Assembly: GCA_964106645.2 (NCBI GenBank)
Contig: OZ067048.1
Strand: one strand, 5' to 3'
DNA from: Podarcis pityusensis
Lineage: Eukaryota
DNA: 64,000 nt
The position numbers and the translations under genes are program-made. The notes beneath the pieces were generated by a model, which was given only the letters and a program-made list of their open reading frames with translations, was not told where the DNA came from and made no database searches. Positions 5,316-48,350 of the stretch are shown piece after piece. Numbering within the stretch: position 1 is the stretch's first letter; each line of letters begins with the position of its first letter.

Positions 5316-8300
5316 CTGTTGAGTAAAAATAAATAAATACCACAATAAATTTTTGTACTATTCCCATTATCTTTAATGGGATTTGAAAAAAGAAAAAACG
5401 TTGTAGGAGACTGCATCCTAATCTTCCTGTACCAATGCCACTAACTGTACAGCCTGGATTTAGTCATAAGAGATTCTCAGTCATGGAGGCATAAAGAAAA
5501 GAAACGTGCCTGTCGTTCAAATTGTTCATGAATTACAAGTGTTTTCAAAGGCCTTTTGCTTCAGATTTACAAAGAGATAATATAAATGGAAGCAGAACAG
5601 CATATGAGCAGTTAAGTATCATAAATGTCTCATGCATTTATATGTTGGGTTCCAAGAACCTATAATAATACAACTTGTCAGTTTGCCATGGATGTCCATT
5701 TTGCTTTAAACAACAACTGCTGCTGCTGCACATTGCCTTGAGATGCATGTGTGAAAAGCAATTAATTTTAAAAAAATGAAATCATGGAGTCTCACGGACA
5801 TATAATGCAGGTTGTGAGATATGCTTACTTCTTCAAGTTGTTCCTTTGTGGAATATTTATTTGTCAATCCAGTAACCAGGTGTGCAACGGTATTCGAACC
5901 AAGTTCAAACCTATGCAAACAGAAGAAGTGCATGAAGTAAATATTTTTATATTAGAAAGAAAATAAACAGGAGTACAAGGAGTGATAATATTTAAAACTT
6001 ACTTTTTTACAAATGTCTGCCAATTCTGCTTTAGAAACTTCCAGGCTAACTGATAACCCTCAGGGTTCCTTCCAACGGAGAGAACAATATACGGAAGATC
6101 CTGCATTTTTATTAAGTCATCCTGTAAACCTTGCTCCATTAACCTAAACAAAGAAAAGAAACCTCAGTGTGAGGAAATAATATTATTACCTTAATAGGAA
6201 CAGGAAAACTCGAGTACGAATAAATGGTACACAGTGTAATGGCTATTTGATTTCATACCCTTAGCTTTCGCTGCAGAGAGATTATTCTTCATTTCCCCCA
6301 AGCATCCTCTCATATAGTCAGCATGGAAAGAAGAAAAGGTGCTGAAAGGGGGTACTGTGCCACACACAGGAATAATAATAATAAATTCTGTATGTCGCTC
6401 ATCTGACTGGGTTGCCTCGGCCACTCTGGGGGGCTTCCAACAAATTACAAAACCACAATAAAACATCAAACATAAAAAACCTCCAGATGCAGGGCTGCCT
6501 TCAGATGTTTATTTCCTTGACATCTGACAAGGCAGGCACGATTACTGAGAAGGCTCTCTGCCTGGTTCCCTGTAACCTCACTTCTCGCAATGAGGGAACC
6601 ACCAGAAGGCCTTCGAAGCTAGATTTCGGGCTGAAAGATGGGGGTATACTGGGCTGAGGCTGTTTCTTCCCTAGTTACAAAATGTGGAAGAGCCTATGGG
6701 CCATAGAGAAGTTTGATTGAAAAGCTGAAATGGGGAAAATCTATATCAAAGGGGAAAATTAACTATTCAGATTAATCTCTTCTGTGCTGTGGGGAAGGGT
6801 TCTTTCTCTTTGAAATCTTTGGCAAAGACGAGCAGTGGGAGACAGAACGCTCAGAACACACCCAGACCTAAAAGAATGAAAAAGCTGGCCTGCAGCTGAA
6901 GATCAGACACCACTTGTTCACCTTTGTCTCCTGCACCTCACCTAAAAATCTGATCTGCCCTGCCTTACCCCGTTACAGCTTCTAATTCCATAGGAACAGT
7001 CACAATGTGAAACAGCATTTATAGCCAGTGCACATGAACAAAATGTGCAACTGGTGTGTGCACTGACCTTTTAACTGTGAGACACTTCGTTCCAATCCAA
7101 TGTTACAATGTTGTTGCTTTTTGTTGCACTGCAATGGTTAAGAGATGATGAAAATACAGGTGGCTGTGGCCTTGCATTTACAACATCTCTCTTTTAATTT
7201 AAAGCCGTTCATGTTTTCAGAGAATACAGTCATACCTCATGTTGCATCCGCTTCAGGTTACGTCTCTTCAAGTTGCGTCCCGCAGCAACCTGGAAGTACC
7301 AGAATGGTTACTTCCGGGTTTCGCCACTCGCACAGGCACAGAAGCGCTAAATTGTGCTGTGTGCAGACGCGGCACTTCTGGAAGCGAACACTTTGATGTG
7401 CCTCCGGGAAAGATTATGTCCGCAACTCGAGGTTCCACTGTACTCACCATTCAAGCTTCTCCTTATTTGGGCTTAGGCTGAGAACAGATTCAATTATCCT
7501 TTTCTCAGTATTAAATTTGGGCAGCTTGTGTTTGCTGAAAAGGAAGTCCCAGCCTTCGTCCGTCTGTGCTCCAACAGCATATACCGCAAACTTGATGTCA
7601 TTGGGCAAACTGCAACAAATGGAGGCTTCAGGTTAGTTCTGACATGCATCTCTTGGTGTTGGTTTCTTATGTGGAATGGACTCTCTCAGGAGGTTGTGGA
7701 CTCTCCTTCAATGGAGGCTTTTAAGCAGAGGTTGGAGGACCATCTCTTTTGGATGCTTTAGCTGAGATTCCTGCATTGCAGGGGGTTGGACTAGATGCCC
7801 CTGTGACGTTAACATATGAGAGTGCTGGAGGTGAAATAGTTAAACAGGTTAACCAATCAGAACCCAGGGGGGTGGAGTCAGAGGGACTATAAAACCAGCT
7901 CTGGGAGGGGCAAAGGGGGAGTTCGTTGGGAGTTGGGTGGTTGGTTGGAGTGGGAGTGAATTGGGATAGAGTCTGTGGGTAGGTTGAGTTAGTGTAGCGA
8001 AATAAGCTGAGTCAGGAACAGTTAGGACCTGGGAAGACAAGTAAATATCTGAGAGGTGGTTTAGTGAGTGAGAGCAAGTAGCGGAAGATATAGGTCTGGC
8101 TAGGCACCCCATGATTGTAATTGACTGAGATCGTTTATGAAACCACATGCTTGTTAAACTGCAATAAATAAACAGAAGTTTATGTTCCAATTTAACCCTG
8201 ACTGGACTCAGTATTTTACCAGGTAGGGCCTGGGTGGTGGCAGCGAGAAATAAAGTGGTGGCACAGGGATCAATAGACGGTGAAACATCCGGGAACCCTG

Positions 8301-15700: not shown

Positions 15701-18700
15701 CAGTTCACGGTCCCTCAGATACTGTTGGGGGGAGGGCTATAGTTTGAAAAAAATATGAATGAATTCCTATGCACACTGCACATATTTTATTTGTGGTGCA
15801 CAAAAAACAGGAAAAACTATACATTATTTAAAATGAAGAATGATTTTAATCAACATAAACTTATAAGTATTTCAATGGGAAGTATGGGCCTGCTTTTTGC
15901 CAGTATATGAGAACATCGCAGCTGCAGACAGCCAGCTTGTTGACATCACAAGATGCGGCTAGCTGTGGGAAAGAAGATTCCCGGAAGTTCACAGGCTTCT
16001 CAGAGCTCTGTGAAGAGTGTAATTTGAGACCTTCCGTTTGCGTATGTACAGGAAGTTTGTTGGACTTGCTGGATGAAGTTTGAAGTGGTCGGACATGATT
16101 TCTGTAGTGCTGTAATGTCAGAAATAAACATCATGTAAATAGATTTCTGACTACTCTTCTTTCCCTGCTAGGGAAGCAGGAGGAGGGGGTGTGCATTTAC
16201 CCACGCTGGGAAAATGTCGCCTATCAAAATCTCCCTGGTCTGTCCGGGAATTCAGCCAGAGGAGGTTACCGGTAAACGAGCTCCGAGAGCAGTGAGAGGG
16301 GCCAGCCTCTCCGGAGGGGGTTTGTAAACCAACACTTTTGGCTAATGAGATGGTCGTTAGATGGATATCTATATAAGGGAATGCGCAGCGCCGGATATCG
16401 CATCGACAGAGATGCAGAAAATTGAGTCTGCTCAGACGCAGAAAATGATCCAACCCACGGTGGGGGCTCTGAGGCAGTGAACCAACCCAGGCAAGGTAAG
16501 CCTTGCCAGCTCCTGGCCTAGAGCGAGTAAGGGAGCGCTGAACAGGGAGGAGGGCCGAGGAGACCCTCACACCCTTTCCCCCGCCTCCTCTGTGCTAGGG
16601 GTGGTGGTGGTGCTGCCGCCCTCCGAGGCCATAGACCCGTTAAGACAGTGGTGGATTCTGTAACTCCCGGGTTGGGCCGGGTTCAGGACCCTGGCAGCGA
16701 GATCTGGCCCGCAAACCATAGTTTGAGGACCCCTGCTTTATAAGTGCATGAAGTGTTATCCTAAATTGGCAGGAATATACACATACACGTGTAATATATA
16801 TATAGAGAGAGGAAAAATGTAAGCAGTGAAATCAGGGGGAAATGAAATGTGAAAAATATTGACAGTGACAATTATGTTAAAGTGGATGTAAAACCATTAC
16901 AGTGATGTATTTTTGTTAAACAATTATAGGCCGTTCACACATCAGCGTTGATGACAGCACACACATCCTGACATTGGCAAGCTAATTGTCACTTGTAGTG
17001 GGATAATTACATGTTATCTCAATTCTGGTGACTGAAGTGCTACCCTATTAAGAATGTTATTTCACCTGTCACCTGAAATAAGGTAGCAGCTTTTATCTCA
17101 AATTAGCTTGCCAATGCCAGGATGCTTAGTTGCTCAAGAGGGACGTGTCCTTTATCAGTCTCCCAGCCCTGAAACTCATGCTGCCCCCATGCCCCACCCC
17201 ATATACATGAATAGCAGTATATGACTTGTGGTCCAGGGTGTCTGGAGTTATGGACAAGAATCTTTTCAGGTGATTGTTGCTGGTTTGACTTATTTCCAAT
17301 AATAATAATAGTTCTATAATCTTCAGCGAGCAATCAACATTGATTTTAAGAAACATTTTAGTATTATAAAAACTGGAATGTTAATACTCACAACTTTCAG
17401 TTCTGGGTGGGTAACATTTACAGACAGAAATTCCATAAAATTTGCAAATCCTTCATTGAGCCAGAGATCATTCCACCATTCCATGGTGACTAGATTTCCA
17501 AACCACTGCAAGAGAAAACATCTGATAGCAGAGATTTTCAACTGTTTTAAATTAATCCTCTGGTGCCTTCATTACACTGAAGAATCCACTGACTAGCGCA
17601 GCTATCAAGTTCATGTAAAAAATTAGTGATAACTTACCTGGTGAGCAAGTTCATGGGCTATAACCAAGGTAATTCCAAGTCTACTTGACGCTGAGGATTT
17701 TTCAGGATCGTATAACAAAGCAGATTCCCTGTATGTAATCAATCCCCAATTTTCCATTGCACCAGACTGAAAATCGGGAATAGCTGCAAGGTCTGCAAAT
17801 ACATTTTGAAAAAGTTGTCCCTCATACCTACTCACTCCATTTATAAATTCACAAGTCAACTTTGAAAGTAAACATATACATAGGTAGGTTTCGTTTGCAT
17901 GTATGTGTAACTTAGATCAACATTTCTATCAAAAGTAAAGTAGCGAGTTTACCTTGCTTAGGCAGAGGATATGGAATGCTAAAATATCCCTCATAGAAGT
18001 CTAACAGTTTTACTGCTGCATCCAAGGCATAATCCAGTTGGTTGATCACATGTGGTACAGCATATACTGAAACCTAAAATCATCACCAACAACAAAACAC
18101 AAACATTGATGAATTCTGAACTCCAACTTAAGAAAATATAAAAGATAATTAATTTGTTAACACCTTAAAATGAGAGTAAAGTTGAAATGTATCCAACATT
18201 TGATTTAGCTTTTCCTACCTTCTGTGCATAGGTAAACTCCTGTAAAAACCAATGGCAGAGGATATGTTTCTTAGGAAGACATAGTCCTGATCCATTCACT
18301 TCCGGGGTGGCGCCACCGGCAATGGCGGACTCCCTCTGAATTGGAGGGACTAGCTCTGCATGAAACGGGTCTTTCCGCTGCGGCGTAGCGGGGACCCTTC
18401 TGGAAATCACAGGCAGATGAAGCCTGTGACCGTGGGACTCGACGGGCACCCTTAGCGCCCCCCCAACCCACAAAGGAACCCACAAACGGGCTCCGAAGTG
18501 AAGAGGGGGAAGTGGCGCAGTGCTGTGAGTCAATTGCTTTTTCTGCGGAGCGAAGCCGCATAGTCGTTGCCGGAGAGCGCTGCCTTTTTCCTGGGACAAT
18601 TTGGCATTTAAAACAACCAACCGTGAGTACTGGAACATTGAATATTTGGACTTCAAATAAGAACTGGCGAAATAAAAAGGAATCTGGACTTAAAAATTAA

Positions 18701-21700
18701 CCCTAATTTGGTACTGAAATGGGAAGGTTTAAACAGGAAGTCACCCTCCCGTTTCCTCGTAGTCAGAACAAAGCAAAGACAACGCAAATTAGAGCCTTAA
18801 AAATCACTTTTAAAGGATCAACTTTCATCATTTAAAATCGCTGAACCCCCCCTTCGGTAGCAGGGGAAGAAGGGGGACCTTTTCTGAGCTGCTTAAACCT
18901 GCAGAAGTGAATCTAAAGCAAAGTAATTTTCCACCGTCCTGACCCTGGAGCGGGGTGTCAGAATTGACGTTTGAAACTCATTGACCAGAAACAAATGTCT
19001 TTTGACAGATAGTTAAAAGAAGAGAAACATTGTGACTCCATTGTTTCCCTTCGTCTTTTAAAAGAACAAATATGGACAAAATATCTTAAAAAAGAAACTT
19101 TGTTGCTATTGTTTTCAAGAAAAAGAACAACCAGAAGTTTTTCCCCCTAGTGGGGAACTGTGAAATTGTAACTAATTCCTGGGAACTTGCAGCTGTCACT
19201 GATTACAACTGTGGGAAAGGATTTGTGACCTTGTAGGACAATGTCTTCAGAAGCACTGTTGGGTGCTTTCTGTAAAATAAATGCCCTATTGGATCAGTTA
19301 AGTCAGAAGACGGATTTCATGACTAATGCGGCCAGAACCTTTGAACAGGTAGTGGGAAACTATATGGAGCCCACCCAGGAATCAAAACAGGAGCGTGCCA
19401 TGACAGAACAACTGAAAGAAGAGGACCTTGCTGAATCTTGGGCGCCAGAGACGGAGGGAGTTGCGGCCCAGCAGGAATATAAACTCTTGGATTTGATAAA
19501 TGAACTTGGAAAAAATCAGACTTGGAAAGATAAAATCTGGTTTGGTTTGGAAATGGGGGGTTGGATAGACCCCCCTTTACAGGGAGATTTGGACTTTTCA
19601 AGTCTGGAAAGGGGCCGCCAGATGTTTGGAGCTGTGGGGGCTCTCAACTTTGAAGGGAATCTGGAGCATGCTTGTAAATACTACATCGAGCTATGGAAAA
19701 GGGATCGTCTTGCTGAAAAGGGTCAAAAACACTACCAAGCCGGAGTTCCCACGAATAAAAGGGAAATATAAAGAAGATGTACGAAAGGGACATGGAAGAG
19801 ACTTGAGGGCCTCGGATATAAGATTGCCAGGTTAATGTGCTAGATTAATAGGATAAAAAGGACTGACAAAACCCGGGACCAGGAGGAAGGGACATTGGAT
19901 GAAGACTGGATTGCTTTTTTCTTTTCTTTTTATCATTAGGACTGTTTTATAAAATTGATGAATGTTAGGAAAATGTTGAAATGAAACTATTTGGCTCTTA
20001 TAAAAATGTCTAAAGAACTAGGTAAGAATGTTATGGTTTAGGAGAAGTTGGTAAAAATTAAGATTTAAGTTTTAAACTTTAAGGTTTTGTATAAGATAAG
20101 ATGAAAATAGATCAAGGTAATGTGATGACAGAATACTATGAATTATGGAAAGGATTTGCTGTGATTATTATAAAACAGGATACAGGAAAAGGGAGGAGGA
20201 GGAGGTCAAGGAAAGAAGGTATTGAAAGTGGAGAATTGGAGAATGATGGTTTTATTTTTATTTTTATTTTTCTCTTTTCTTTTTCTTTTTCCTTTTCTGT
20301 CTTGTTTTTTCCTTTGTGTAATTCTTTAAAAAAAACAACTCTTTTTTCAATAAATATCATTTTTTTTTAAAAAGAGTCCTGATCCATTCAAATTAAAGGA
20401 CTCCGAAGGTGGATCTTAATTTAGCAAAAAATACACTAACAATGGCAGTGAAAGTATCTATATCTTATATAACCTTTTTAACCTTGTCAAACCCTGGAAT
20501 CAAGAAAATTTTATTTTGTGGAGGTTGCTTGTGGAGATTCTGACTAAGGATCAGGCAGAACTTTCTGACGGTAAGAGCTGTTCAACAGTGGAATGGTCTC
20601 CCTCGGGAGGTGATGCTCTCTCCTTCCTTAGAGGTTTTTAAGCATAGGTTGGGTGGCTATCAACTGCAGAAAGTTGAGCTAGATGACCCTCAGGCATGGC
20701 CGTGGCCAAGTGGGGGCAGGGGAGCAGTTGGCTCCCCTAGATCAAGTAAAACAATAGAAATACTGACAAATCATATTGGTTCTAACCTGCCCCCCAAGTC
20801 CTGCCCCCCTAACAAAGTCATGCCACTCCCTAACAAAATTCTTGTCTATGCCCATGCCCTCAGGGCACTTTCCAAATTAACAATTCCATGATTCTATAGG
20901 GAAGAGCTACTGTGGTGGGTAGAGAGTTGAATTTGGATAGGGACCAAGTTCAAATGTTTGCTTAGAAATGAAGTACACAGGATTACCCTGGGGCAGTGGC
21001 TGTATGTATCTCATACTAAGCTACCTCATGGTGTTTTAGCGCAGATAAACTGAAAGTCTAACTAGGAAAGATGAAGTGCCCTGTGACTGCCTTTATTATT
21101 ATTTTTTAATTTAAAGGCACATTATCTCATTATCCAGATGCTCAGTCTTTTTTGCAACTGCATGTACTCAAGCTTTTTAATTTTTATCCCAGCAGTTTAG
21201 AAAATTAAGCATTACTGGTACACATTTCTACCAACAAATGTAAACAGCTGTGCAATGGCTGCTATCCATATAACTGATGCTTAACAAATGGAGCACGACC
21301 ACTGCAAGTCTAAACTTTTGCTTCTTATAGCATTGTAATAGACGTTTTGAGAACTACTGAAAAAATATTTCAAATTCTATAGGGTTGGATCCAAAGTTAG
21401 TCACAACCAATTTAAGCACCATTGATTTCAATGGATCTACTCTAAGTATGACTAAGTCTAGCTCTAACCCATAATAATTTCTTTAAAACCTTTCCAGGCT
21501 CTAATTACTTTAAAAATTGAAACTGCTACAATTTTAAAATATCAATATGCAACACTTCAGTTGATAGGAAAAGTTTACCTTAATTCCACGGGAAGTCATC
21601 TTGGAAACGGATTTGAAATCTGAAACAATGAAGGCCACTAGGTAAGTGCTCATCTTTACACTGACATCAAAACGGTCTTCAATGAGCTGCCCTCCAATGT

Positions 21701-23192
21701 TTACGGATTCCACCTAAAAAATGTAAAAACTATTACATTTCAACTCTAGCTCTGAAGTACATTCATTACTTCTGGTCTTGCGCGCGCGCGCGCACACACA
21801 CACACACACACACTATATATATTATCTCCCTCATAGCTCTTTTAAATGCTTTCTCCATTTCACAGTTGCAAACCTACATCTAAGAAGAAGCTAGAAACAG
21901 ATCAGTTAAGAAGGGCAACCTAGCAGGAGAGAATTGCCCCCTATTTCTAGCCCTACTCAACAGATTTACACTTTTCCAGCACATGAATATATTCATTTTT
22001 AAATTCTGCTTTGCTTTCTTATGTGAGCACCAAAAGTGAACACAACAGGAGCATAAACTCCTACGAGATACGGTTTATAGTGTACAACGGTAATGTTTTC
22101 TACGTTACTTTGCTTTATCTTGCTCAACTAGGCAGATCAAAGAATACAAAGTATACACCTACAATGGGCATATTGGATAGTGCAAGATGTTTCGGTTCTC
22201 TTATGATCTTAATAGAAAATTTAGCTTTGAATGCAGGCTCATCAAAGCAAGGGAAAGCCATACGTGCAGCTGTTGCTTCAAACTGTGTTGCTGCAAGCAC
22301 CCTGGAATTAAGAAACAGAATACATGACATATATGCTTTGTTAGTAGTACAGTACATAGTAGTACAGTAAAAATATTCAAAGATGAACATTTCACCTAAT
22401 GAATAGAAATCAGCTTGCATTTCTTCATTGAAGAAAGAGATATTTAAAAAACTTTTAACAGTGTATTAAGATGCAGATTGCATTATGCTAATGAAATTTA
22501 CTTTGATATAAATATGCATATGACTGCAACCTAAAGGTGCTTCCAGACAGGTATTTAATGTGGGATTGGAGCTCCTCACATATGCAAGTTTTTTGCGTGT
22601 GTTTTGCAATTCTATATGACACGAACTTTATAAACACAGAAGCAATGAATCACAGGAAACAGGAAGGTCAAAAAGATACATACAAATCTAAATGAAAATA
22701 GTCTTACCTTACTTCTCCTTCTGGAGTTCTATATGAGCTTTTATAGAATCCATGAAAACTGTCCGAGAGATTAGCAGAATACTCAATGCTAATAATGTAC
22801 TTGTGCTCAATTTGCAGTGGTTCAGTAGCAACGAGTGCAATCTGTTCATATGGTGGGTATTCTAAAACAGTCACTTCTTTATCAGCATCAGGGGATCCTG
22901 TTGCTCCTTGGATGGTAGCTTTAGTGATCTGGAGATATTTGCTGTGCAGGATGACTGAGCTAGTTTGTTCAGTTACCATAATCTCTATTTTGGCCAGTCC
23001 AGTAAAAGTTAAAGTGGTGAGATTTGGATGAATAAGAAGATCATAATGAACTGGGACGACATGCTTGGGAAGCCTACTTTTATTCCAAGGAAACTGATTA
23101 CTTCCACCTCCAGTGCTTGAATCTGTTGTTTGGCTATTGAGATTACAGCTCAAAAATGGAACAAGACTTAAAATGACTAGCAATAGAAACAT
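5154..23192 (-). CDS. ERAP1: Endoplasmic reticulum aminopeptidase 1, complete CDS in 18 coding exons (933 aa)
   Basis: M1 aminopeptidase motifs FQSGAMEN and HELAH-x18-E (WLNEG), S1 Gln (ATQFE), exon-10 two-Cys loop. All introns GT-AG with compatible phases; exon lengths 485,139,135,121,155,114,132,132,78,158,80,184,157,185,162,141,82,162 sum to 2802. FQSGAMEN and [10 protein letters not shown] fit ERAP1 better than ERAP2. Confidence 0.95.
5829..5910 (-). CDS. ERAP1: ERAP1 exon 18 ([21 protein letters not shown]...LEE)
   Basis: 82 nt, AG / GTAAG boundaries. Confidence 0.94.
6003..6143 (-). CDS. ERAP1: ERAP1 exon 17 ([17 protein letters not shown]...[14 protein letters not shown])
   Basis: 141 nt, AG / GTAAG boundaries. 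Confidence 0.94.
6371..6660 (-). mobile_element. L2/CR1-group LINE 3' fragment with (ATT)n tail; further copies at about 11213-11435, 12681-12820, 25440-25590 and (opposite strand) 26015-26105
   Basis: Recurrent ccatctggctgggtttccccagccactctgggcggcttccaaca...cagggctgccttcagatgtc motif next to AAT microsatellites. Confidence 0.7.
7227..7440. mobile_element. Tc1/mariner-pogo-type MITE inserted at the ERAP1 exon 16 donor
   Basis: TA|CAGTCATACCTC ... GAGGTTCCACTG|TA; TA duplications 7225-26 and 7441-42. Confidence 0.8.
7448..7609 (-). CDS. ERAP1: ERAP1 exon 16 ([24 protein letters not shown]...NKEKLE)
   Basis: 162 nt, AG / GTGAGT boundaries; absent from the ORF track, translated by hand. Confidence 0.94.
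7802..8313 (+). mobile_element. Solo LTR (512 bp) nested in a CR1-type 3' tail
   Basis: TGTG...CACA termini, 5-bp TSD GCCCC/GACCC (1 mismatch), CCAAT 7853, GC box about 7867-7878, TATAAAA 7888, AATAAA 8163. Flanks rejoin into the CR1 tail ggactagatgaccctt..cccttccaactct. Confidence 0.8.
8717..8901 (-). CDS. ERAP1: ERAP1 exon 15 ([16 protein letters not shown]...[10 protein letters not shown]...GNF)
   Basis: 185 nt, conserved Cys pair, AG/GT boundaries. Confidence 0.95.
9005..9031. repeat. (CA)n microsatellite
   Basis: Direct observation. Confidence 0.95.
9591..9747 (-). CDS. ERAP1: ERAP1 exon 14 ([12 protein letters not shown]...[14 protein letters not shown]...QLK)
   Basis: 157 nt, AG/GT boundaries. 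Confidence 0.95.
10340..10470 (-). mobile_element. Degenerate SINE with 5S rRNA-derived head and LINE-like tail
   Basis: 10419-10459 gtctcccatccagacactgactagacccagccctgcttagc matches the reverse complement of 5S rRNA (gtctcccatccaagtactaaccaggcccgaccctgcttagc), the A/C-box region. Confidence 0.6.
11682..11865 (-). CDS. ERAP1: ERAP1 exon 13 ([17 protein letters not shown]...NDRASLI)
   Basis: 184 nt, AG/GT boundaries. Confidence 0.95.
12172..12251 (-). CDS. ERAP1: ERAP1 exon 12 ([13 protein letters not shown]...TKT)
   Basis: 80 nt, LWHVPLTY motif. Confidence 0.95.
12919..13076 (-). CDS. ERAP1: ERAP1 exon 11 (HWTQ...[16 protein letters not shown]...)
   Basis: 158 nt, WTLQKGFP motif. Confidence 0.93.
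13562..13697. mobile_element. Palindromic hAT MITE
   Basis: Near-perfect hairpin, 8-bp TSD GTTTAAAG on both sides. Confidence 0.92.
14089..14166 (-). CDS. ERAP1: ERAP1 exon 10 ([26 protein letters not shown]), two-Cys loop
   Basis: 78 nt phase-0 exon with AG / GTGAGT boundaries, two Cys as in the mammalian exon-10 loop. Confidence 0.88.
14315..14446 (-). CDS. ERAP1: ERAP1 exon 9 (GACLLNML...DLWNSLSG)
   Basis: 132 nt, AG/GT boundaries. Confidence 0.95.
14847..14978 (-). CDS. ERAP1: ERAP1 exon 8 (EDHFL...[10 protein letters not shown]...MFDSVSYEK)
   Basis: 132 nt, catalytic Tyr region, AG/GT boundaries. Confidence 0.95.
15671..16735. mobile_element. Non-autonomous hAT/Charlie element with OC1 (OposCharlie1)-like ends and unrelated internal sequence
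   Basis: TIRs (C)GGGGTCCTCAAACT / AGTTTGAGGACCCCTG, perfect 8-bp TSD CTTTATAA (15663-70, 16736-43). Left ~230 bp resembles my recollection of the OC1 terminus. Confidence 0.85.
17392..17505 (-). CDS. ERAP1: ERAP1 exon 7 ([21 protein letters not shown])
   Basis: 114 nt, third zinc ligand Glu. Confidence 0.97.
17638..17792 (-). CDS. ERAP1: ERAP1 exon 6 (GAMEN and HELAH motifs)
   Basis: 155 nt, [11 protein letters not shown]...AHELAHQ. Confidence 0.97.
17953..18073 (-). CDS. ERAP1: ERAP1 exon 5 (VSVYAVP...[11 protein letters not shown])
   Basis: AG/GT boundaries, 121 nt, PYPLPK motif. Confidence 0.95.
18299..20374 (+). mobile_element. ~2.1 kb non-autonomous L1-derived retroposon with a single ORF (copy A, ERAP1 intron 4)
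   Basis: 16-bp TSD AGTCCTGATCCATTCA (18283-98, 20375-90), GC-rich 5' end with ETS/YY1-like motifs, ORF 19241-19771 continuing after a frameshift to 19835, AATAAA 20349 plus T/A tail. Confidence 0.88.
19241..19835 (+). pseudogene. ORF of retroposon copy A (~197 aa when one frameshift near the A5 run at ~19725 is corrected)
   Basis: Homologous along its length to ORF 54898-55515; ends [16 protein letters not shown]. Confidence 0.75.
20695..20856. mobile_element. hAT-type MITE nested in a CR1 tail (about 20550-20900)
   Basis: CATGG..CCATG TIRs, 8-bp TSD CCCTCAGG; same family as 42027-42190. Confidence 0.85.
21579..21713 (-). CDS. ERAP1: ERAP1 exon 4 (VESVNIGG...[14 protein letters not shown]...GIK)
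   Basis: AG/GT boundaries, 135 nt, MSTYLVAF motif. Confidence 0.95.
21779..21822. repeat. Compound (GC)n(AC)n(TA)n alternating purine-pyrimidine tract
   Basis: Direct observation. Confidence 0.95.
22163..22301 (-). CDS. ERAP1: ERAP1 exon 3 ([22 protein letters not shown]...SNMPI)
   Basis: AG/GT boundaries, 139 nt, M1 motif. Confidence 0.95.
22708..23192 (-). CDS. ERAP1: ERAP1 exon 2 (first coding; exon starts 23271): signal peptide and N-terminal domain MFLLLVIL...YRTPEGEV
   Basis: Acceptor at 23273-23272, ATG 23192, [20 protein letters not shown], donor GTAAG at 22707. Confidence 0.93.
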
Positions 23193-24329
23193 TTTCAGCT
23201 TCTTCAAGGCAACTGTATAATCTGGAAGCAGCAATCTCAGTGTCAGGTTGTTATTGTATCCAGTGACAAATCTAATAAAGAAACATTATTAAATTAATAG
23301 AAAAACCTTTTAAAACCTCTTTGACTACCACCTATGGCTTTCCCTATCAATGCAATCTTTTGTGTCAGAAAAACATCAACAGTGCAGAATTCCATGCACT
23401 TTGGATTTATAAAGTGGAGACTGAAGGAGCACTTCCATTGCATCATACATGTCTTATTCAACTGCTCTGATCTGCAGAACTTGCCCTTCTACAAATGCCA
23501 TGATGATGTCTGTTCTGCAAGTGCAAGGAACTGAACTTCTAGTGTGGTGGCACCTATACTTTGATACTCCCTGCCTATTGATAGTAGAGGCAGGTGCCTT
23601 TGCTACATTATTTCAGATGTCTACGGAAAACTTTTCATTTTAGCAAGCCTACCCAGATATGTAACTAGCACTGTGTATACCCCATACTGTACATTTAAGA
23701 AACAATACTGTAATGGAAAGCACCACTGCACCCCAAATTCTAAGAACTGTAGTTTGCTAAACTGCTGGGAATTGCAGCTTTGAGGGGTAAACAACAATTC
23801 CCAAGATTCTTTGGGGGAAGACATGGGCTATGAATTTGCTTTCAAAGTTTGGTGTGTGCACAGCCTAAGTCATCTTATGTTCGTTAAAAAAAAGTTTTTA
23901 CAGATTTTCACATAGACCACACAGAGCATTGTGATAATCTGTAAAACTTTCAAAATAAATAAAATATGCACAGCAGGTAGGTGCACAAGTCTAAGGCTTG
24001 TTTCTGCAGCCCCATATGCCAAGCACTCAGTCCCAGGGATACACATGGAACCCCTTGGGGCAGGCTAGAAGCCAGTAGTTCTTGGTCTGTCCTCATTTTA
24101 CTGCCAACTAATTCCACCAAAGCGAGCTGGACTTTTAGCACGATGGGGGGTGGGGTGGAGGAGAAGCAACTTTTCCTCAGCTCCAGGTAGAGTTTTAATT
24201 TTCGGCCATTTTTGTCGTTGCGGCTGCCTACTTATTCCACAGCTCAAGCACCTGAGCTTCCCCGCACCACCCCCTCAAGATTCCTGGGAACTGTAGTTTC
24301 AAGGTGCTGGGAAAACATGGCTCCCTGCG

Positions 24330-29162: not shown

Positions 29163-29900
29163 GGCTGTATCCAGTTCTGGGTGCCACAATTTAAGGATAC
29201 AGTGGTACCTCGGGTTACAGATGCTTCAGGTTACAGATGCTTCAGCTTACAGACTCCACTAACCCAGAACTAGTACCTCGGGTTAAGAACTTTGCTTCAG
29301 GATGAGAACAGAAATCGCGTGGCGGCGGCACGCAGGCGGCAGCAGGAGGCCCCATTAGCTAAAGTGGTACCTCAGGTTAAGAACAGTTTCAGGTTAAGAA
29401 AGAGCAGATCTCCAGAACAAATTAAGTTCTTAACCCGAGGTACCACTGTATTGATAAGCTGGAACTTTTGTAGCTTACGGCACCCAAGATGATCAAGGGT
29501 CTGAAAACCAAACTTTATGAGGAATGGTTAAGAGAGTTGGGTGTGTTTATCCTAGATAAGAGAAGACTGAGAGCACATATGGTAGCCATCTTCAAATGGA
29601 CTGTCACATGGAAGATGGAGCAAGCTTGTTTTCTCCTGCTCCAGAGGCTAGGACCTGAATCAATGGCTTCAAGCTACAAGAAAAGGGATTCTGATTAAAC
29701 ATCAGGAGGAACTTTCTGACAGTAGGAGCTGTTTGACAGTGGAACATTCTCCCTCAGGAGATTGTGGACTTTCCATCACTGGAGGTTTTTCAGCAGGGTT
29801 TGGATGGCCATCTGTCATGGATGGTTTAGTTGAGATTCCTGCATTGCAGTGGGTTGAATTAGATAACACTTGGGGTCCCTTCCAACTCTGATTCTATGAA
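29163..29900 (+). mobile_element. CR1 LINE 3' fragment interrupted by a mariner-type MITE (29200-29448)
   Basis: CR1 ORF2 end (MIKGL..YEEWLRELGVF.L.KRRLR) and tail cccttccaactct..ttctatg; MITE with CAGTGGTACCTCGGGTTA TIRs and TA TSD. Confidence 0.85.
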
Positions 29901-30188: not shown

Positions 30189-30811
30189 TTTTTTGTTTTT
30201 TTTAAATAATTTTTTATTATAGTTTTAAACAACAAAAAAAAGAAAAACAACACACACAAAAAACAATACAAGACTTAACAATATAAACACAAAACAATTA
30301 AAAACAAACTCTCTTTTCCATTTCCAATTTTAAGTTACTTATTTTCTGGACTTCCTCATACCTCCCTCTTTTGTATTCCAATCCACATTATTTGTCCAGC
30401 AGTTTCTTTTCCACTTTTTTAATCTCAATCTTTAATTTAATAAAATGTTATAATATATAACTTCAACTTTTTTTTTTTAAACCTAATCCTTTAATCTTAA
30501 TATCATATAACTTTAAAGTTTCCCCTTTTAAAATCAAATTTCCATTTCTTTAAACTTATTTAATCTTAATCTTTAATCTTAATCTATCCTTAACTTTAAC
30601 CTGTGCAGCTGGAAACCACTTGTTTTCAGTCCATCATCACTCTAACATTCCTTAATTTTGCAGTGTTTCTGAAGATAGTCTGTGAATTTCTTCCAGTCTT
30701 CCTCCATCGACTCTTCTCCCTGGTCTCGGATTCTGCCAGTCATTTCCGCCAATTCCATATAGTCCATAAATTTCATCTGCCATTCCTCCAGCGTGGGAAG
30801 TTCTTGTGTCT
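30189..30811 (-). mobile_element. 5'-truncated L1 (ORF2 C-terminus, 3' UTR and A-rich tail)
   Basis: 18-bp TSD CCCTCTGGACCTCTTTTG (30171-88, 30812-29). The - strand reads TQELPTLEEWQMKFMDYMELAEMTGRIRDQGEESMEEDWKKFTDYL, typical of non-mammalian L1 ORF2 ends. Confidence 0.85.
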
Positions 30812-31772: not shown

Positions 31773-34471
31773 ATGTTGTTGTTGTTGATAAGCCTATCAA
31801 GCTTATCTTGCTGTCCATGCCCTAAAAAAAGAGTATAAAGACCTAATATGCCACCAAAAGAATGCCTATACCAGAAAATGTTGGTTAGAATTAATTAGTG
31901 CGGCAAAAGCAAAAGATCAGACACTATTCTACAAACTGGTAGCTTCTGGCACCCATAAAGCTATTTCTTAACCTCACAAATTCTTAACCTCACAAATTCC
32001 CCCTAGCCTTTGGGTCTCATTCTTCCAATCTCTGTACGAGGATGCTGAACCTCCACTACGGAATTATAATATAGAACAACTGGCTAAATGGCCTCCAGTT
32101 TCAATAACTGAAGTGAAATCATATATAAACCAACTGAAAACGGCCAAAGCCCCAGGCTCAGACAGCATTACACCAGAAATGATAAAAGCACAGGCGGATT
32201 GGTGGGCACCTTTCTTAGCCAACCTCTTCACTTACATAGATGACACTGGCCGCATCCCAAAGGAATGGGGAACAGCCATAATAGTCCCAATCTATAAAAA
32301 GGGCAACAGAGGGGACCCAGCGAATTGTAGGCCGATTAGCTTATTAAGTGTGATTAGTAAACTCTACTCAAAGCACCTCCTTAATAAGTTTACAGAATGG
32401 CTAGAGAATGAAGATATCCTGGCAATAGAACAAGCGGGCTTCAGACCTGGAAGGTCCACGATAGATCACTGTCTAACGTTACAACATCTCATTGACAAAT
32501 ACAAATCAGGAGGGCAGGCCTCACTATACGCTGCCTTCGTTGACCTAAAAGCAGCCTTTGATACAGTCTCCAGAACCAGACTCTGGGACAGACTACAGGG
32601 TACCAATATAGATAGAAGGCTCCTGCTCCTAATTTAGGCACTGCACGCAAACACGGCCCTTAGAGTCAGGTGTAGCCGCCTAGGACACCTAACGGACCCA
32701 ATAAAAACCTTCAAAGGAGTCAGGCAAGGGTGCCTATTGGCCCCTCTACTATTTAATTTCTATCTAAATAACTTAGTATCTGCACTCAATGACTCAGAAC
32801 TCCACCCGCCGAAGCTTGCAAATCGGCATATTTCGGACCTGCTATATGCCGATGATGCGGTAATTCTATCTAGAACCCCATTGGACTCAAAAGAGCACTA
32901 AGAAAGCTCGCAGCATACTGCGAATCTGAACGTCTCAAAATCAACTATCAAAAGACCAAGATACTCGCTTTTGGGGAAAAACCAAAGCTTAGAAGCTGGG
33001 AACTCCAAGGCCATAAATTAGAACAAGCCACAAACTACAAGTATCTAGGAATGGTGGTACAGGCCTCAGGAACCAACAAACTACACATAAACTCCATTGG
33101 GAGTTCAGCGGGGGGAAACGCAAATTGTATCCTTAAATTCTTCAGAGCACAAGGGGGCTTCTTTGTCCCCGCAGCTCTAAAATTATACAAGGCCAAAACT
33201 TTGGCACAACTCCTCTATGGTTCCTTTTTGGGCCCGCCTTCCTCTGCTTTCTCCCCACTTGAGAGAGTTCAATCCAGACTTCTTAGAGCTCTCCTCCAAG
33301 TCCCCATATGTGTCTCAAACGCATGGGTTAGATTAGAAACGGGGATGATGAGAGTGGAGGCTAGCATCTGTCTAACATCAATTTACAAATGGCTGACATT
33401 GAACCTGCTCCCCCGAGGAATAGCCCCATTGATCCTCTGTGACCAATTCCAGTCGGGCTGGCAGACTGCAGTCTTGAACACCCTCCGGAAATTGGGTTTT
33501 GCCCCTCAAGCCCTTCTAAGTCTGGGCTTGGACCAGGCAAAAGCTATGGTCAGGCAAAGAATATTAGACACCGAGAGACAGCAGGACTGTGCAAGGTGCC
33601 CCAACTATAGAATTGGAGAAATCGAGAGATATATAGCCGCACCGGCACCATATCTCTTCTTTCTCGTATCCAGGGATGCAAGAAGGGCCTTTACACTCAC
33701 CAGAAGCTGGGCTCTTCCCTCGCCGGTCCTCGATGGAGCCTTTAGAAGGGTCCCGTATGCTCAGAGACTTTGCACCTGTCCTTTGGGAGAGATAGGAAGC
33801 CCAGAACACTTGCACTTTAGATGTCCCTTTTATAAAGAGGCACGTAGTAAGATCATGGATCCCCTACTGGTAAGGCTCGGCGACCTCCTGCAAAAGCAAA
33901 AATTTGACCTTTTGCTATTGGGCAAAGATCAGAAGATGACCTGGATGGTCACCAGATTCTGTCTACAGATCTGTAGGCGCAGACCATCGGCCAACTCAAA
34001 ATAGTCGGGCATGAAAAGCCCCAAACACGGTTCCATGGGTGATTCTGAGTCAACTCCCTGGGACAGTTTATTGTTGTACATTGTTTCTAAATTTAGTGTT
34101 GTATATTGTTTTAATTGTCTGTTTTAACCATATTTGCACAGCAGTTTTTAACGTTGTGAGTGTCCTCTATTTAAGAGGCTTCTACTCTGCAGCCTCTTAT
34201 AGTTGTTTTATCTGCGAGTCTTTTAGTTCTTATGCTCTTGCAGCTGTTTTAACTGCGTGTCTTTGTTGGTTTTTAGCTCTTATCTGTTTTAATTATTAGT
34301 TTTTTATCCATTATCTGTGTTTAATTTTGTATTTTATTTGGATGTTTTATGCCTGTTTCCTTGTCCTCATTTGCCCTGACAATTATCGGTCAAAAATTCC
34401 TAACTGCTATTTTATCTATATGCCTTTTTAAATCCTGGTCTGTGACCGTAATAAAGTTCATTCATTCATTC
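31773..34471 (+). mobile_element. 5'-truncated RTE-X-like LINE (RT plus C-terminal zinc knuckle), inactivated
   Basis: RT motifs IVPIYKKG..RPISLL, QAGFR, FVDLKAAFD, GVRQG, YADD (~32845); stop at 32635-37 and frameshift ~32880; C-x-C..H..C knuckle in ORF 33051-34004; AATAAA plus (TTCA)n tail; TSD agtcgtttagt/agttgtttagt. Clade assignment is inferred. Confidence 0.85.
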
Positions 34472-36554: not shown

Positions 36555-36845
36555 GTAGAATTGGAAGGGACCCCAAGAGTCATCTAGTCCAACCCAATGC
36601 AATGCAAGAATCTCAACTAAAACATCCATGACAGAACTCAAAAACTACCAAGGAAGGGGAGTCCATCACCTCCCATGTGAGACCATTCCTGATGAGCAGC
36701 TCTTACTGTCAGAAAGTTCTTCCTGGTGTTTCGTCGGAACCACCTTTCTTGTAACTTGAATCCATTGTTTCGGGACCTAGTGTCTGAAAACAAGCTTGCT
36801 CCATCTTCCATGTGATAGGTCTTTAGATATTTGAAGATGGTTAAG
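36555..36845 (-). mobile_element. CR1 3' fragment
   Basis: Reverse complement of the CR1 tail at 29550-29900 (NGFKLQERWFR..RKNFLTVRA). Confidence 0.8.
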
Positions 36846-36955: not shown

Positions 36956-38285
36956 TGTTGTTGTTGTTTAGTCATTTAGTCGTGTCCGACTCTTTGTGAC
37001 CCCCATGGACCAGAGCACGCCAGGCACTTCTGTCTTCCACTGCCTCCCGCAATTTAGTCAAACTCATGCTGGTAGCTTCGAGAACACTATCCAACCATCT
37101 CATCCTCTGTCATCCCCTTCTCCTTGTGCCTTCCATCTTTCCCAACATCAGGGTCTTTTCCAGGGAGTCTTCTCTTCTCATGAGGTGGCCAAAGTATTGG
37201 AGTCTCAGCTTCACGATCTGTCCTTCCAGTGAGCACTCAGGGCTGATTTCCTTAAGAATGGATAGGTTTGATCTTCTTGCAGTCCATGGGACTCTCAAGA
37301 GTCTCCTCCAGCACCATAATTCAAAAACATCAATTCTTCAGCGATCAGCCTTCTTTATGGTCCAGCTCTCACTTCCATACATCACTACTGGGAAAACCAT
37401 AGCTTTTATTATATGGACCTTTGTTGGCAAGGTGATGTCTCTACTTTTTAAGATGCTGCCTAGGTTTGTCATTGCTTTTCTCCCAAGAAGCAGGCGTCTT
37501 TTAATTTTGTGGCTGCTGTCAGCATCTGCAGTGATCATGGAGCCCAAGAAAGTAAAATCTCTCACTGCCTCCATTTCTTTCCCTTCTATTTGCCAGGAGG
37601 TGATGGGACCAGTGGCCATGATCTTCGTTTTTTTGATGTTGAGCTTCAGACCATATTTTGCACTCTCCTCTTTCACCCTCAATAAAAGGTTCTTTAATTC
37701 CTCCTCACTTTCTGCCATCAAGGTTGTGTCATCTGCATATCTGAGGTTGTTGATATTTCTTCCGGCAATCTTAATTCTGGCTAGGGATTCATCCAGCCCA
37801 GCCTTTCGCATGATGAATTCTGCATATAAGTTAAATAAGCAGGGAGAAAATATACAGCCTTGTCGTACTCCTTTCCCAATTTTGAACCAATCAGTTGTTC
37901 CATATCCAGTTCTAACTGTAGCTTCTTGTCCCACATAGAGATTTCTCAGGAGACAGATGAGGTGATCAGGCACTTCCATTTCTTTAAGAACTTGCCATAG
38001 TTTGCTGTGGTCGACACAGTCAAAGGCTTTTGCATAGTCAATGAAGCAGAAGTAGATGTCTTTCTGGAACTCTCTGGCTTTCTCCATAATCCAGCGCATG
38101 TTTGCAATTTGGTCTCTGGTTCCTCTGCCTCTTCTAAATCCAGCTTGCACTTCTGGGAGTTCTCGGTCCACATACTGCTTGAGCCTTCCTTGTAGAATTT
38201 TAAGCATAACCTTGCTAGCGTGTGAAATGAGTGCAATTGTGCGGCAGTTGGAGCATTCTTTGGCAATGCCCTTCTTTGGGATTGG
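36956..38285 (-). mobile_element. BovB (RTE) LINE, 5'-truncated, with RT domain
   Basis: ORF 37338-38336: RTIALISHASKVMLKILQ, FIDYAKAFDCVDH, KGVRQGC, NLRYADDTTLMAESEEELK; premature TGA at 37338; (CAA)n tail; 12-bp TSD GATGGTAAATTT (36944-55, 38286-97). Confidence 0.95.
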
Positions 38286-38319
38286 GATGGTAAATTTAGC
38301 TATTTGCAAACAGACGCAC

Positions 38320-38535
38320 CAGACCATAAGACGCACCTAGTTTTTGGAGGAGGAAAACAAGAAAAAAAATATTCTGAATCCCAGAAGCCAGAACAGCAAG
38401 AGGGATCACTGCGCAGCGATCCCTTTTGCTGTTCTGGCTTCTGGGATAGCTGCGCAGCCTGCATTCGCTCCACACACATTTCCCCTTACTTTTTAGGAGG
38501 GAAAAAGTGAGTCTTATAGAGCAAAAAATACGGTA
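38320..38535. mobile_element. Partial Tc1/mariner-type MITE
   Basis: ataagacgcacc ... gtcttatagagcaaaaaatacgg|ta terminus. Confidence 0.6.
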
Positions 38536-45790: not shown

Positions 45791-47289
45791 TGCAAACACA
45801 ACAATAATTTTCACCAATCCAAATTACCATGCTTGTGAAACGCTCAAAATGCAAGATGATATCCTAGGATCATAACAAATCAGGAACTGAGGTGCCACCT
45901 GCAAAATGCGCTTTGAGCCACCACACATCATGCACCCACACATCCAGGTGAGGGTCTTCTACAAGATGGCATTGGATCCCACCTGGCCCAGAGCCCCCTC
46001 CAAGTGCATGGCACGGTCAAGCGTACTAATGCTCACCAGCAGCAGCCCAAACATGTATGGGGTGGGGGGAATCAAGAACTGGGGGTCTCAATCACAGAAC
46101 ATGCTTTGGGCTACCACAGATCAGACACCTACACAACTGGGAGGGTGTCATCTGTGATACGGCATTTTAATCCATCAGACTCATGGGTCCATGACGCTGT
46201 AGTCAAGTGCATCTAGACACACCAACAATAGCCAAAATTGGGGCAGGGCAAAGAACTAGGGAAATGGGAACCCAAAATATAGGTCTTGGCCAAAAGATGG
46301 ATCCTATGACTCAACAGAAGAGGGCAGAGCTTGCATTTGATCTTAATTGGCAATGCCCATGACATTAACTTGGAGGTGGATTGGTCCAACATGCATAGTC
46401 AAATCTTAGCTAAGTATATGGCCAGCTGGTTTTCCATAGCCGTTTTTGTTTCTTTTAAAAGCTGCTTGGCCAACAAGCATCAGGTTACTATTTGGTGACA
46501 AACCACGAAACTACTGCACTACCGTAAGTCATTTCCCTTATGGGTCATCCTCACATTTATCTCCCTCCAAAATGACCAAGTTCCAGTTCGAAAATGATAC
46601 TGATATCACACCACCTTTACCACCTGTGGGAGGAAGATAATTTATCAGTTGATGTGGGAGAGAAGCATCGCCTGCCAAATTCCTACTTGCTACGCAGTTG
46701 TCACGCAGAGGAGCCCTGCCAGAATTTTTACCCAATAGGAACAGTATGCGCGGTAATTCTTACGCCCTGTTTGATTCAGTGAAACGTGGAAAGGTTAAAG
46801 ATGGGAGGGGGAAAGCCCTAGAAGCCGCAAATGGATACTCAAAATAATTTAACTCGCCCCCACCCCCGATCTCTTAAAACAGACATTACTTGCGCTCACA
46901 ACCAAGGGCTGGGAAAATGGTAGCTACTAGGATGTCTTTACTGCATGTTTATGGCTAGCAACCCGATCCTAAGCGTGTTTACTCAGAGCTCACGTCTACT
47001 TGGCTCAGTGGGATTTATGATTGGGTTTAGGATCGCAGCCGGATCCGATTCTAATCCGGTTGTGGGTGGGGTGTGCGTGCAAGTCAATGCTTGGCCATAT
47101 AGGAAACAACGATGGCGAATTATTCCAGATTAATACACACACACACACACACACACACACACCCCATAGCTGTCAACGTTTGCCTTTTTTTTAAAGGAAA
47201 TTCCCTTATTCCAAATAGGATTCCTCGCAAGAAAAGGGAAAAGTTGACAGCTATGACACACACGCAACTACAGGAACAGATACTGCAAG

Positions 47290-48350
47290 TGCTGCGAAAC
47301 GGAGCGTCGACCTCTCCTCCTGGATGTGGCGCCGATGGCCGCGGAGCAAGGCGCCTAGCCAGACAAGCTGCGAGCTTCCTCTCCCGCCGCCTGCTCTTGA
47401 GGCCGAGGCGGCAGGCGCTGCTCCGTCTGAAGCAGCCCAGCCCAGGCAGGGGGAGGGATTGCACAAGCCCCGGAGCAGAAAATAGTCGGCCGGGGTTGGT
47501 GCGAGAGGCGAAGCTAGCCGGGGACGCCGCCGTGCCGAGAAGAAGGGGAAGCGCAGCAGCGCCGGAGACCCTCTTCCCCCCCCCTTCTTTCTGTTTTTTT
47601 GGCCTTCGTCGTCATCCGGGCTGTTGTTTTCCCTGCTGTCGACCGATATTATTGCATGCATGCAGCGGATTTGAGCACCGGCCGCCGCAGCCGCCCGGGC
47701 AACATGCAGCTGTCTCCCTGCGGGGCGGAGGAAGCGGAGTGAGGAGGAGCCGCAGTGGCGGGTTTCTGCTTTCTTCTTCTTCATTTGCGTGTGTGTTTCT
47801 CCTCCTCCCGCCACCCCGCCTTGTTTGGGCTTTTTGCTCGCGGGAAAATGGAGCCTTTCCCCAGTAACGGTGAGTACGACAGCTCCTTCCTCCCTTCTGT
47901 CTCTCTGTCTGGCCTTTCGGCTCGCCAGCTGTAACCAGACTCCTCCTCGCCCCTCATGCTGTTGCTGCTGCTGGAGGAGAGCTCCGAGGGTGGCAGAAAG
48001 CACCCGGCCCCGAGGCGGCAACAAGAGAGAGGCCGTGCGCCCCGGCGGCTGTGCCGGGAAAGGGAGACTTGCTGCATCCGCGCAAGGCCGCGCGCAGCCT
48101 GAAGGTCAGGGGGTCGCCTCCCCAAAAGGAAAGCGCCGGGGTGAAGGAGCCATGCGCGCGCGCCCACCCTCCGCCTCGCCTCCACCCGCAACTTGAAGCT
48201 CTGAGCTAAGCGACCCCCGAGGCTCCTGGAAAGGAAAGTTTGGCGGGAGGAAGCCTCCTCGTGGCCTGAAGCGAGGCGCTTCTGAGGCGCACTAGCGCCT
48301 CTGTTTTGGAAAAGTAGGAGCGCCCAGCTAGGCGACCCTTCCAGGGAGGA
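47290..48350 (+). promoter_or_regulatory. LNPEP: LNPEP CpG-island promoter, 5' UTR and start of intron 1
   Basis: High GC and CpG density surrounding the first coding exon. Confidence 0.85.
47848..47869 (+). CDS. LNPEP: LNPEP exon 1 coding part (MEPFPSN)
   Basis: Kozak AAAATGG, donor G|GTGAGT at 47870, phase 1 fits exon 2. Confidence 0.9.

Follow-up and report, generated by a model that had tools for sequence, protein, structure and literature searches.

HAL1 elements are derivatives of L1 that encode only the ORF1 protein (ORF1p; ORF, open reading frame) and have arisen several times in mammals (PMC5753468), and the HAL1 ORF1 product is thought to improve its own RNA as a template (PMC2241872). 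Such half-L1 elements raise the question of why an element keeps its own protein when the reverse transcriptase is borrowed, and how that protein favours its own RNA. Here, we analysed a 64,000-nucleotide stretch of DNA from Podarcis pityusensis (assembly GCA_964106645.2, contig OZ067048.1; hereafter the window), which carries two copies, A and B, of a HAL1-like element whose ORF ends in a conserved tail of 16 residues. The family has pared its protein down to a coiled coil, remnants of ORF1p and this tail, and the question thereby narrows to a short peptide. We put the probability at roughly 0.6 that the tail is the C-terminal short linear motif of a protein made by a lacertid half-L1 without ORF2, a motif that would be required in cis for L1-dependent retroposition through contact with a partner.

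The tail and its ORF occupy the following positions in the window:

54898-54948, minus strand: tail of copy B, comprising the final 16 codons and the TGA stop of an intact ORF of 205 amino acids
54898-55515, minus strand: intact ORF of copy B, 205 amino acids, with a coiled coil, RRM and CTD remnants, an E-x-L-Q-K-G motif and the tail
19785-19835, plus strand: tail of copy A, 16 codons matching those of copy B and then TAA; the ATG-started ORF of this copy is in a different frame
19241-19771, plus strand: front piece of the copy A ORF, 176 amino acids, cut off early by a frameshift
19626-19835, plus strand: frame of copy A that holds the tail, split from the front piece by an 11-nucleotide gap after 19690 (relative to the copy L001)

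The tails of copies A and B differ at 6 of 51 bases (TTG/TTA, GAT/GAC, AGA/AGG, TTG/CTT at two bases, and TAA/TGA), and both are translated into the identical 16 residues followed by a stop, confirming the silent-only divergence reported in the initial annotation. The high divergence that it described for the upstream protein was also recovered: the ORF bodies of A and B were too diverged to be aligned by blastn, which gave 67% identity for the 5' parts and 69% for the 3' parts of the two copies, and protein identity across the two subfamilies is about 33-46%. Since only about 24% of the sites in the tail codons are synonymous (11.5 of 48) and the pattern recurs in independent copies, silent-only differences between A and B are unlikely to have arisen by chance. 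The 11-nucleotide gap in copy A, seen against its closest intact relative (L001, 87% identical), shifts the frame and leaves the tail out of frame, and copy A was always treated as two separate ORF pieces. Judged by this lesion, it is a dead copy in which the tail survives only as a fossil. The description of the tail as the C-terminus of a retroposon ORF thus holds for copy B, with its intact 205-residue frame, and not for copy A.

Conservation of the tail was assessed in a wider set of proteins. A word search with the copy B ORF retrieved three annotated Podarcis lilfordi proteins and one protein from a public contig, and a profile search run over 1.8 billion representatives brought in four further lineages, more distant ones with proteins of 182-215 amino acids. 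All copies terminate in a common motif, [KR]-G-x-[GE]-[RS]-D-[LI]-R-A-S-D-[ILV]-[RI]-x-P-[GD] followed by the stop, with tail variants including KGTERDLRASDVIDPG. The core R-D-L-R-A-S-D and the closing P-G are kept among proteins that are only about 23% identical overall. In an alignment of 12 proteins, six of the nine invariant columns fall in the last 16 residues, and these 16 columns form the best-conserved window, with a mean pairwise identity of 0.75 against a median of 0.32.

The codon-level analysis covered ten copies, namely A, B and eight from Podarcis assemblies or public contigs. Nearly every core codon has synonymous variants (GAC/GAT, TTG/TTA, AGG/AGA, GCC/GCG, TCG/TCA, and GAT/GAC). 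Variable sites at the first, second and third codon positions numbered 2, 0 and 9 in the six closest copies (binomial p = 0.0014) and 5, 6 and 16 in all ten copies (p = 0.005), so that every one of the 16 third positions was variable, and the corresponding counts for the 21 bases past the stop were 4, 2 and 4. By the Nei-Gojobori method, the proportion of nonsynonymous differences (pN) in the most diverged pairs was 0.05-0.30 in the tail versus 0.40-0.61 in the ORF body, and the proportion of synonymous differences (pS) was 0.25-0.93 versus 0.49-0.85, with an omega of 0.23-0.51 for the ORF body. These substitution patterns indicate that purifying selection acts on the whole ORF and is strongest on the tail. 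The coding constraint proposed in the initial annotation is accordingly borne out by the codon-position counts, the window identity and the low tail pN relative to the body.

The initial annotation had also taken all 16 residues as the functional unit and had named frequent missense or frameshift changes among subfamily consensuses as evidence against constraint. Missense changes were found outside the core (H, Q, T or L at position 3; L, S, T or D at position 14), and one copy has an A-to-P change in its tail, but the core and the P-G end persist. As positions 3, 4, 12-14 and 16 tolerate missense changes, a short conserved motif is retained whose constrained unit is nearer 7-9 residues than 16. 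Separately, at 54906-54911, five source-species contigs of other copies end in ...R-S-P-G-stop, and the more diverged ...A-S-S-A-I-R-S-P-G was seen in a run guessed to be RNA; these variant ends in contigs of other copies imply that outer-tail missense variants circulate in the family. Furthermore, conservation did not follow an RNA structure, the other pattern that would have refuted the initial annotation: a consensus fold computed for the tail with its flanking bases was weak (-8.3 kcal/mol) and contained zero compensatory pairs. Because third positions vary, core residues persist and no RNA structure is supported, the constraint acts on the peptide.

General searches gave little on the identity of the ORF. 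Pfam returned no credible family for either ORF or for the 12 family members, the family profile matched sequences in the PDB only as weak coiled-coil-like noise, and the ESM Atlas searched by features gave no usable match, with all structure matches at a template modelling (TM) score below 0.35. The AlphaFold2 model contained little beyond a long N-terminal helix (residues 3-40), with a mean predicted local distance difference test score (pLDDT) of 45 and values of 63-67 in the tail. The profile search, however, had also retrieved P0009 from Podarcis raffonei, whose aligned part is the N-terminal coiled-coil region of L1 ORF1p up to N-L-R-I-R at the start of the RRM (BLASTP of the copy B ORF, E = 6e-13, 33% identity over 128 residues). 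We aligned 17 lacertid L1 ORF1p sequences, whose profile matches mouse L1 ORF1p (2ldy). An hhalign comparison of the retroposon family with this set gave a probability of 97.8% and an E value of 7e-13 over columns 4-204. Collinearity with ORF1p extends over the coiled coil, the beginning of the RRM (D-F-W ... A-F-R-L-G-R), the CTD remnants (Y-G-x-L-x-x-L-L-R-x-N ... E-x-P-x-x-L) and the E-D-L-Q-K-G motif, and it is interrupted by a gap at the expected place of the RRM core and the initial part of the CTD. In addition, P0006 matched P0018 through the RRM start (E = 3e-4). The protein of about 200 residues stops about 30 residues before the end of ORF1p, where the module made of the L1 ORF2 end and 3' untranslated region (3'UTR) starts.

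These alignments identify the ORF as a pruned L1 ORF1 and the element as a HAL1-like half-L1. The ORF is not an orphan, nor is it an unrelated retroposon gene. The N-terminal coiled coil of L1 ORF1p is recognisable both in the BLASTP match and in the modelled helix. Only remnants flanking the RNA-binding RRM and CTD align, the model is disordered there, and no RRM/CTD fold was detected by Pfam, PDB or AlphaFold2, leaving an ORF1-derived yet incomplete ORF1. Taken together, alignment and model indicate that the protein keeps the oligomerisation region of ORF1p but not its RNA-binding fold. Three Podarcis muralis gene models gave ORF1p matches of another kind. The whole C-terminal half of P0016 and P0017, which with P0036 are TRIM39-like or vomeronasal type-2 receptor-like, consists of ORF1p sequence, and in P0036 the match lies away from the C-terminus; these three are either annotation chimeras or exonised L1 pieces.

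The two elements and the segments that tie them to L1 are as follows (TSD, target-site duplication):

18299-20374, plus strand: copy A, full-length element of 2076 nucleotides, with a 16-nucleotide TSD (18283-18298 / 20375-20390), AATAAA and a short A run
54269-56370, minus strand: copy B, full-length half-L1 of 2102 nucleotides, with a 20-nucleotide TSD (56371-56390 / 54249-54268), AATAAA and a short A tail
18299-18629, plus strand: head of copy A, homologous to the Podarcis L1 5'UTR, 78% over 336 aligned positions
54269-54897, minus strand: 3' module of copy B, the last ~100 nucleotides of L1 ORF2 (a remnant) plus the L1 3'UTR, beginning at the stop codon
19836-20374, plus strand: 3' module of copy A, of the same origin as in copy B
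30195-30811, minus strand: 5'-truncated L1 3' end with a TSD, used as the reference within the window for the ORF2 C-terminus and 3'UTR

Bases 1-330 of copy A match the 5'UTR of the L010 L1 at 78% identity, and identity between the 3' module and the L1 3' end is about 70%, with the DNA directly after the tail stop matching the last ~100 nucleotides of the ORF2 C-terminal coding sequence. By this homology, both ends of the element derive from L1. The endonuclease and reverse transcriptase have been lost, since the elements of 2076 and 2102 nucleotides hold a single ORF of about 200 amino acids and only about 100 nucleotides of the ORF2 end. The truncated L1 at 30195-30811 (minus strand) has a 16-nucleotide TSD (AAAGAGGTCCAGAGGG), the last 55 ORF2 codons and a 3'UTR, and it shares its L1 lineage with the 3' module of the half-L1 copies. 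In one P. lilfordi copy (L003:3601-3640), a 9-nucleotide tandem duplication (GGACAATAA) lies right behind the stop, within the ORF2-derived remnant.

Target-site duplications, an A tail and many copies, the hallmarks of L1-type retroposition in HAL1-type elements, were all found, showing that both copies are complete retroposed units inserted in the manner of L1. A contig from a related species (run X8) connects position 54248 to 56371 and skips 2122 bases, with 20 bases common at the joint. This joint is the empty site of copy B, and the insertion is therefore young and lineage-specific. The contigs that mapped to copy B at a likeness of at least 80% numbered 3514 and 3979 in two species, indicating a highly repeated family; the mapped runs consist of contigs and not reads, so that depth does not translate into copy number and rare variants drop out. 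Moreover, contigs from two runs, whose label as RNA is a guess, tile 54982-56366 with 2-4% differences, which suggests that B-like copies are transcribed.

The origin of the tail was traced through the C-terminus of ORF1p. Its opening K-G belongs to E-D-L-Q-K-G, a motif conserved in ORF1p. In L010, which holds the closest L1, the end of ORF1 after D-L-Q reads K-K-V-T-G-E-L-R-A..., and the C-terminal 34 residues of P0001 align with this end at 44% identity (E = 0.002), the alignment extending into G-R-D-L-R. The first ~9 tail residues are therefore collinear with the C-terminal extension of ORF1p. The remaining S-D-I-R-L-P-G resembles ...T-D-I-A-N-L-S-F-G-L... of ORF1p by eye only. A tail hidden Markov model scored against 18 ORF1p extensions did no better than shuffles for most sequences, DNA and BLOSUM alignments of the tail with the L010 extension were not significant alone (only the longer alignment with the preceding motif is), and no R-D-L-R-A-S-D was found in any of the 18 ORF1p sequences or elsewhere in the L1 DNA examined. 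Derivation of the tail from ORF2 read in another frame was considered and rejected, as the match to ORF2 sets in around the last codon and the stop, and the upstream identity of about 33% equals the random level.

The 16 columns that follow E-D-L-Q-K rank among the least conserved of the ORF1p alignment, with an identity of 0.105 against a median of 0.40. The two alignments thus show a reversal of constraint, in which the most conserved window of the parasite (0.75) corresponds to a freely evolving position in L1 ORF1p (0.105). Read in this way, the sequences indicate that the parasite fixed one version of the ORF1p extension, ended its protein just past it and kept that version under strong selection.

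For the function of the tail, we infer that the motif binds a partner and serves mobilisation. Source elements whose protein kept the tail would be the only ones to have left descendants, and on that account the tail would act as a peptide, needed in cis for the L1-dependent retroposition of its own element. In the most likely mode, the tail would be displayed on a coiled-coil oligomer and would contact a partner protein, which may be L1 ORF1p, ORF2p or a host factor. Several points weigh against this proposal. The codon-level sample comprises only ten copies, five of them from public contigs, and six tail positions (3, 4, 12-14 and 16) accept missense changes. One antisense frame has the same wobble positions, and codon periodicity alone leaves the strand unfixed. 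Predicted docking of the C-terminus with the tail (residues 150-205) against residues 160-335 of P0018 (the ORF1p RRM-CTD) scored 0.00, which speaks neither for nor against binding. The poor AlphaFold2 model (mean pLDDT 45) makes a structural role unreadable from it, and the evidence for expression leans on the runs with a guessed RNA label.

Among the alternatives, a role of the nascent chain, as suggested in the initial annotation, fares best, although we consider it unlikely. The last ~16 residues, lying in the ribosomal exit tunnel, would slow or arrest termination at the stop, which sits where the L1 3' module is joined on, and would hold the ribosome on the RNA of the element, so that the L1 machinery could capture it more readily. 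Conservation does peak at the extreme C-terminus, in a block ending in an invariant Pro, then Gly or Asp, and the stop, a layout shared by known arrest peptides. In addition, the stop lies within about 25 nucleotides of the ORF2-derived module in all ten copies, and a cis-acting protein without most of its RNA-binding fold would need another way to stay with its RNA. However, neither the stop codon (TAA or TGA) nor the next base is conserved, and the tail starts within a motif that came from ORF1p, a functional protein that is released. Furthermore, a ribosome stalled on the element RNA yields no ORF2p, which leaves the capture of ORF2p without a mechanism, and the usual result of stalling is mRNA decay. 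The more specific version, in which a parasite-specific signal delays termination at the start of the borrowed L1 3' module and so replaces L1 cis-preference, appears less probable again; if true, it would be the first arrest-type peptide by which a retrotransposon hijacks the machinery of another element.

It is improbable that the tail is instead a C-terminal degron or stability signal, in which the P-G end and the upstream core would set turnover or localisation and not binding to the L1 machinery. The Pro is invariant and the terminal Gly nearly so, and glycine-end degrons of cullin-2 adaptors are similar to such a P-G end. On the other side, one intact copy ends in P-D, the strongest constraint falls on R-D-L-R-A-S-D, six to twelve residues before the end, and it is hard to explain why a parasite should preserve a signal for its own destruction.

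A nucleic-acid constraint on the 51 bases, with the silent pattern being incidental, is very improbable; the bases would then be kept for their RNA or DNA sequence, perhaps because ORF2p recognises a 3' module that begins with them. Such a constraint would fit the adjacency of the tail to the L1-derived 3' module, and mapped depth at 80% likeness is highest over 54823-54990, an interval that takes in both the tail and the piece derived from ORF2. However, every one of the 16 third positions is variable, against only 5 first and 6 second positions, a codon pattern absent from the bases right after the stop. Moreover, the consensus fold described above is weak, with zero compensatory pairs, and upstream of the junction the tail cannot be aligned to the L1 ORF2 coding sequence.

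We give little credence to the absence of selection, with tail identity arising from recent shared ancestry or from gene conversion of 3' ends between the subfamilies. Some pairs do show a lower pS in the tail than in the body (0.17 versus 0.59 for copy B and L001, from small numbers), but in the majority of distant pairs pS is at least as high in the tail as in the body and reaches 0.93. The 3' module beside the tail is just 69% identical between A and B, and the core persists in family members with about 23% identity overall. Least credible of all is a constrained product of a short antisense ORF in which the wobble positions fall on the same bases as in the sense frame. In most copies this antisense frame reads a conserved S-E-A-L-K-S-L opposite the tail, as the common third positions would lead one to expect. 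Over the ORF span, each copy carries 2-14 stops in any antisense frame, and in three of nine copies the frame in question has a stop at the tail edge. The sense frame, which is homologous to ORF1p, stays open for about 600 nucleotides in all but one of the ten copies. A 2A-like peptide was considered as a separate candidate and rejected, since the tail reads D-[ILV]-[RI]-x-P-[GD]-stop in all ten copies and does not match D-[VI]-E-x-N-P-G-P. The partner-contacting linear motif remains our preferred reading.

Several other features of the window were recorded. Long ORFs on opposite strands at 22704-23234 (minus) and 58618-59706 (plus) both contain ...V-V-P-V-H-Y-D ... P-N-L-T-T ... and look like the start of M1-family aminopeptidases; they are probably the first exons of two paralogous host genes, and both half-L1 copies lie near them. 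A short interspersed repeat of a kind common in squamate genomes is present in copies that are 77-82% identical (20536-20661, 29687-29812, 36637-36739, and 7671-7735), one of which lies about 160 nucleotides downstream of half-L1 copy A. Reverse-transcriptase-like ORFs of 174, 317 and 332 amino acids at 32113-34004 (plus) and 37338-38336 (minus) belong to other long interspersed nuclear element (LINE) families and are unrelated to the L1 lineage studied here. The segment at 47100-48560 is rich in G+C and resembles a CpG island or a promoter region; long ORFs overlap on its two strands, and a CA/TG microsatellite lies near 47136.

In comparison with known systems, the tail resembles 2A and arrest peptides in being a short conserved peptide that ends in P-G where the chain is released, and 2A-like peptides occur in some non-long-terminal-repeat (non-LTR) retrotransposons. 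Unlike 2A peptides, the tail has no Glu after D-[ILV] and no Asn before P-G, and it has a stop where 2A needs Pro. The C-terminal position of the conserved block would, by analogy, be compatible with the layout of ribosome arrest peptides. Alu and SVA, which are L1 parasites without an ORF, likewise use L1 ORF2p in trans and have L1-type TSDs and A tails, but they encode no protein, whereas the lizard family keeps its ORF under purifying selection. L1 ORF1p itself is collinear with the lizard protein from the coiled coil to E-D-L-Q-K-G. In contrast to ORF1p, the lizard protein has about 150 RRM and CTD residues missing or degenerate, is about 30 residues shorter at the end, and carries R-D-L-R-A-S-D in place of the terminal motifs ...D-I-A-N-L-S-F-G-L... 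and ...L-G-A-V-G-G....

The closest described system is mammalian HAL1. A literature search found no description of a squamate half-L1 family; Repbase and Dfam lay outside that search and may catalogue the family. Both mammalian HAL1 and the lizard family are derived from L1 by loss of ORF2, with the L1 ends and an ORF1-type gene kept, and both have a high copy number, are moved in trans by L1 and keep their ORF under selection (PMC5753468; PMC2241872). The host of the present family is a squamate, and HAL1-like parasites thus exist outside mammals; since one copy has an intact ORF and a related species shows the empty site, they have been recently active there. Whereas mammalian HAL1 has a complete ORF1, the lizard ORF1 encodes about 200 amino acids without the RRM core and most of the CTD, and the strongest constraint in the lizard family is on a C-terminal peptide that L1 ORF1p does not conserve.

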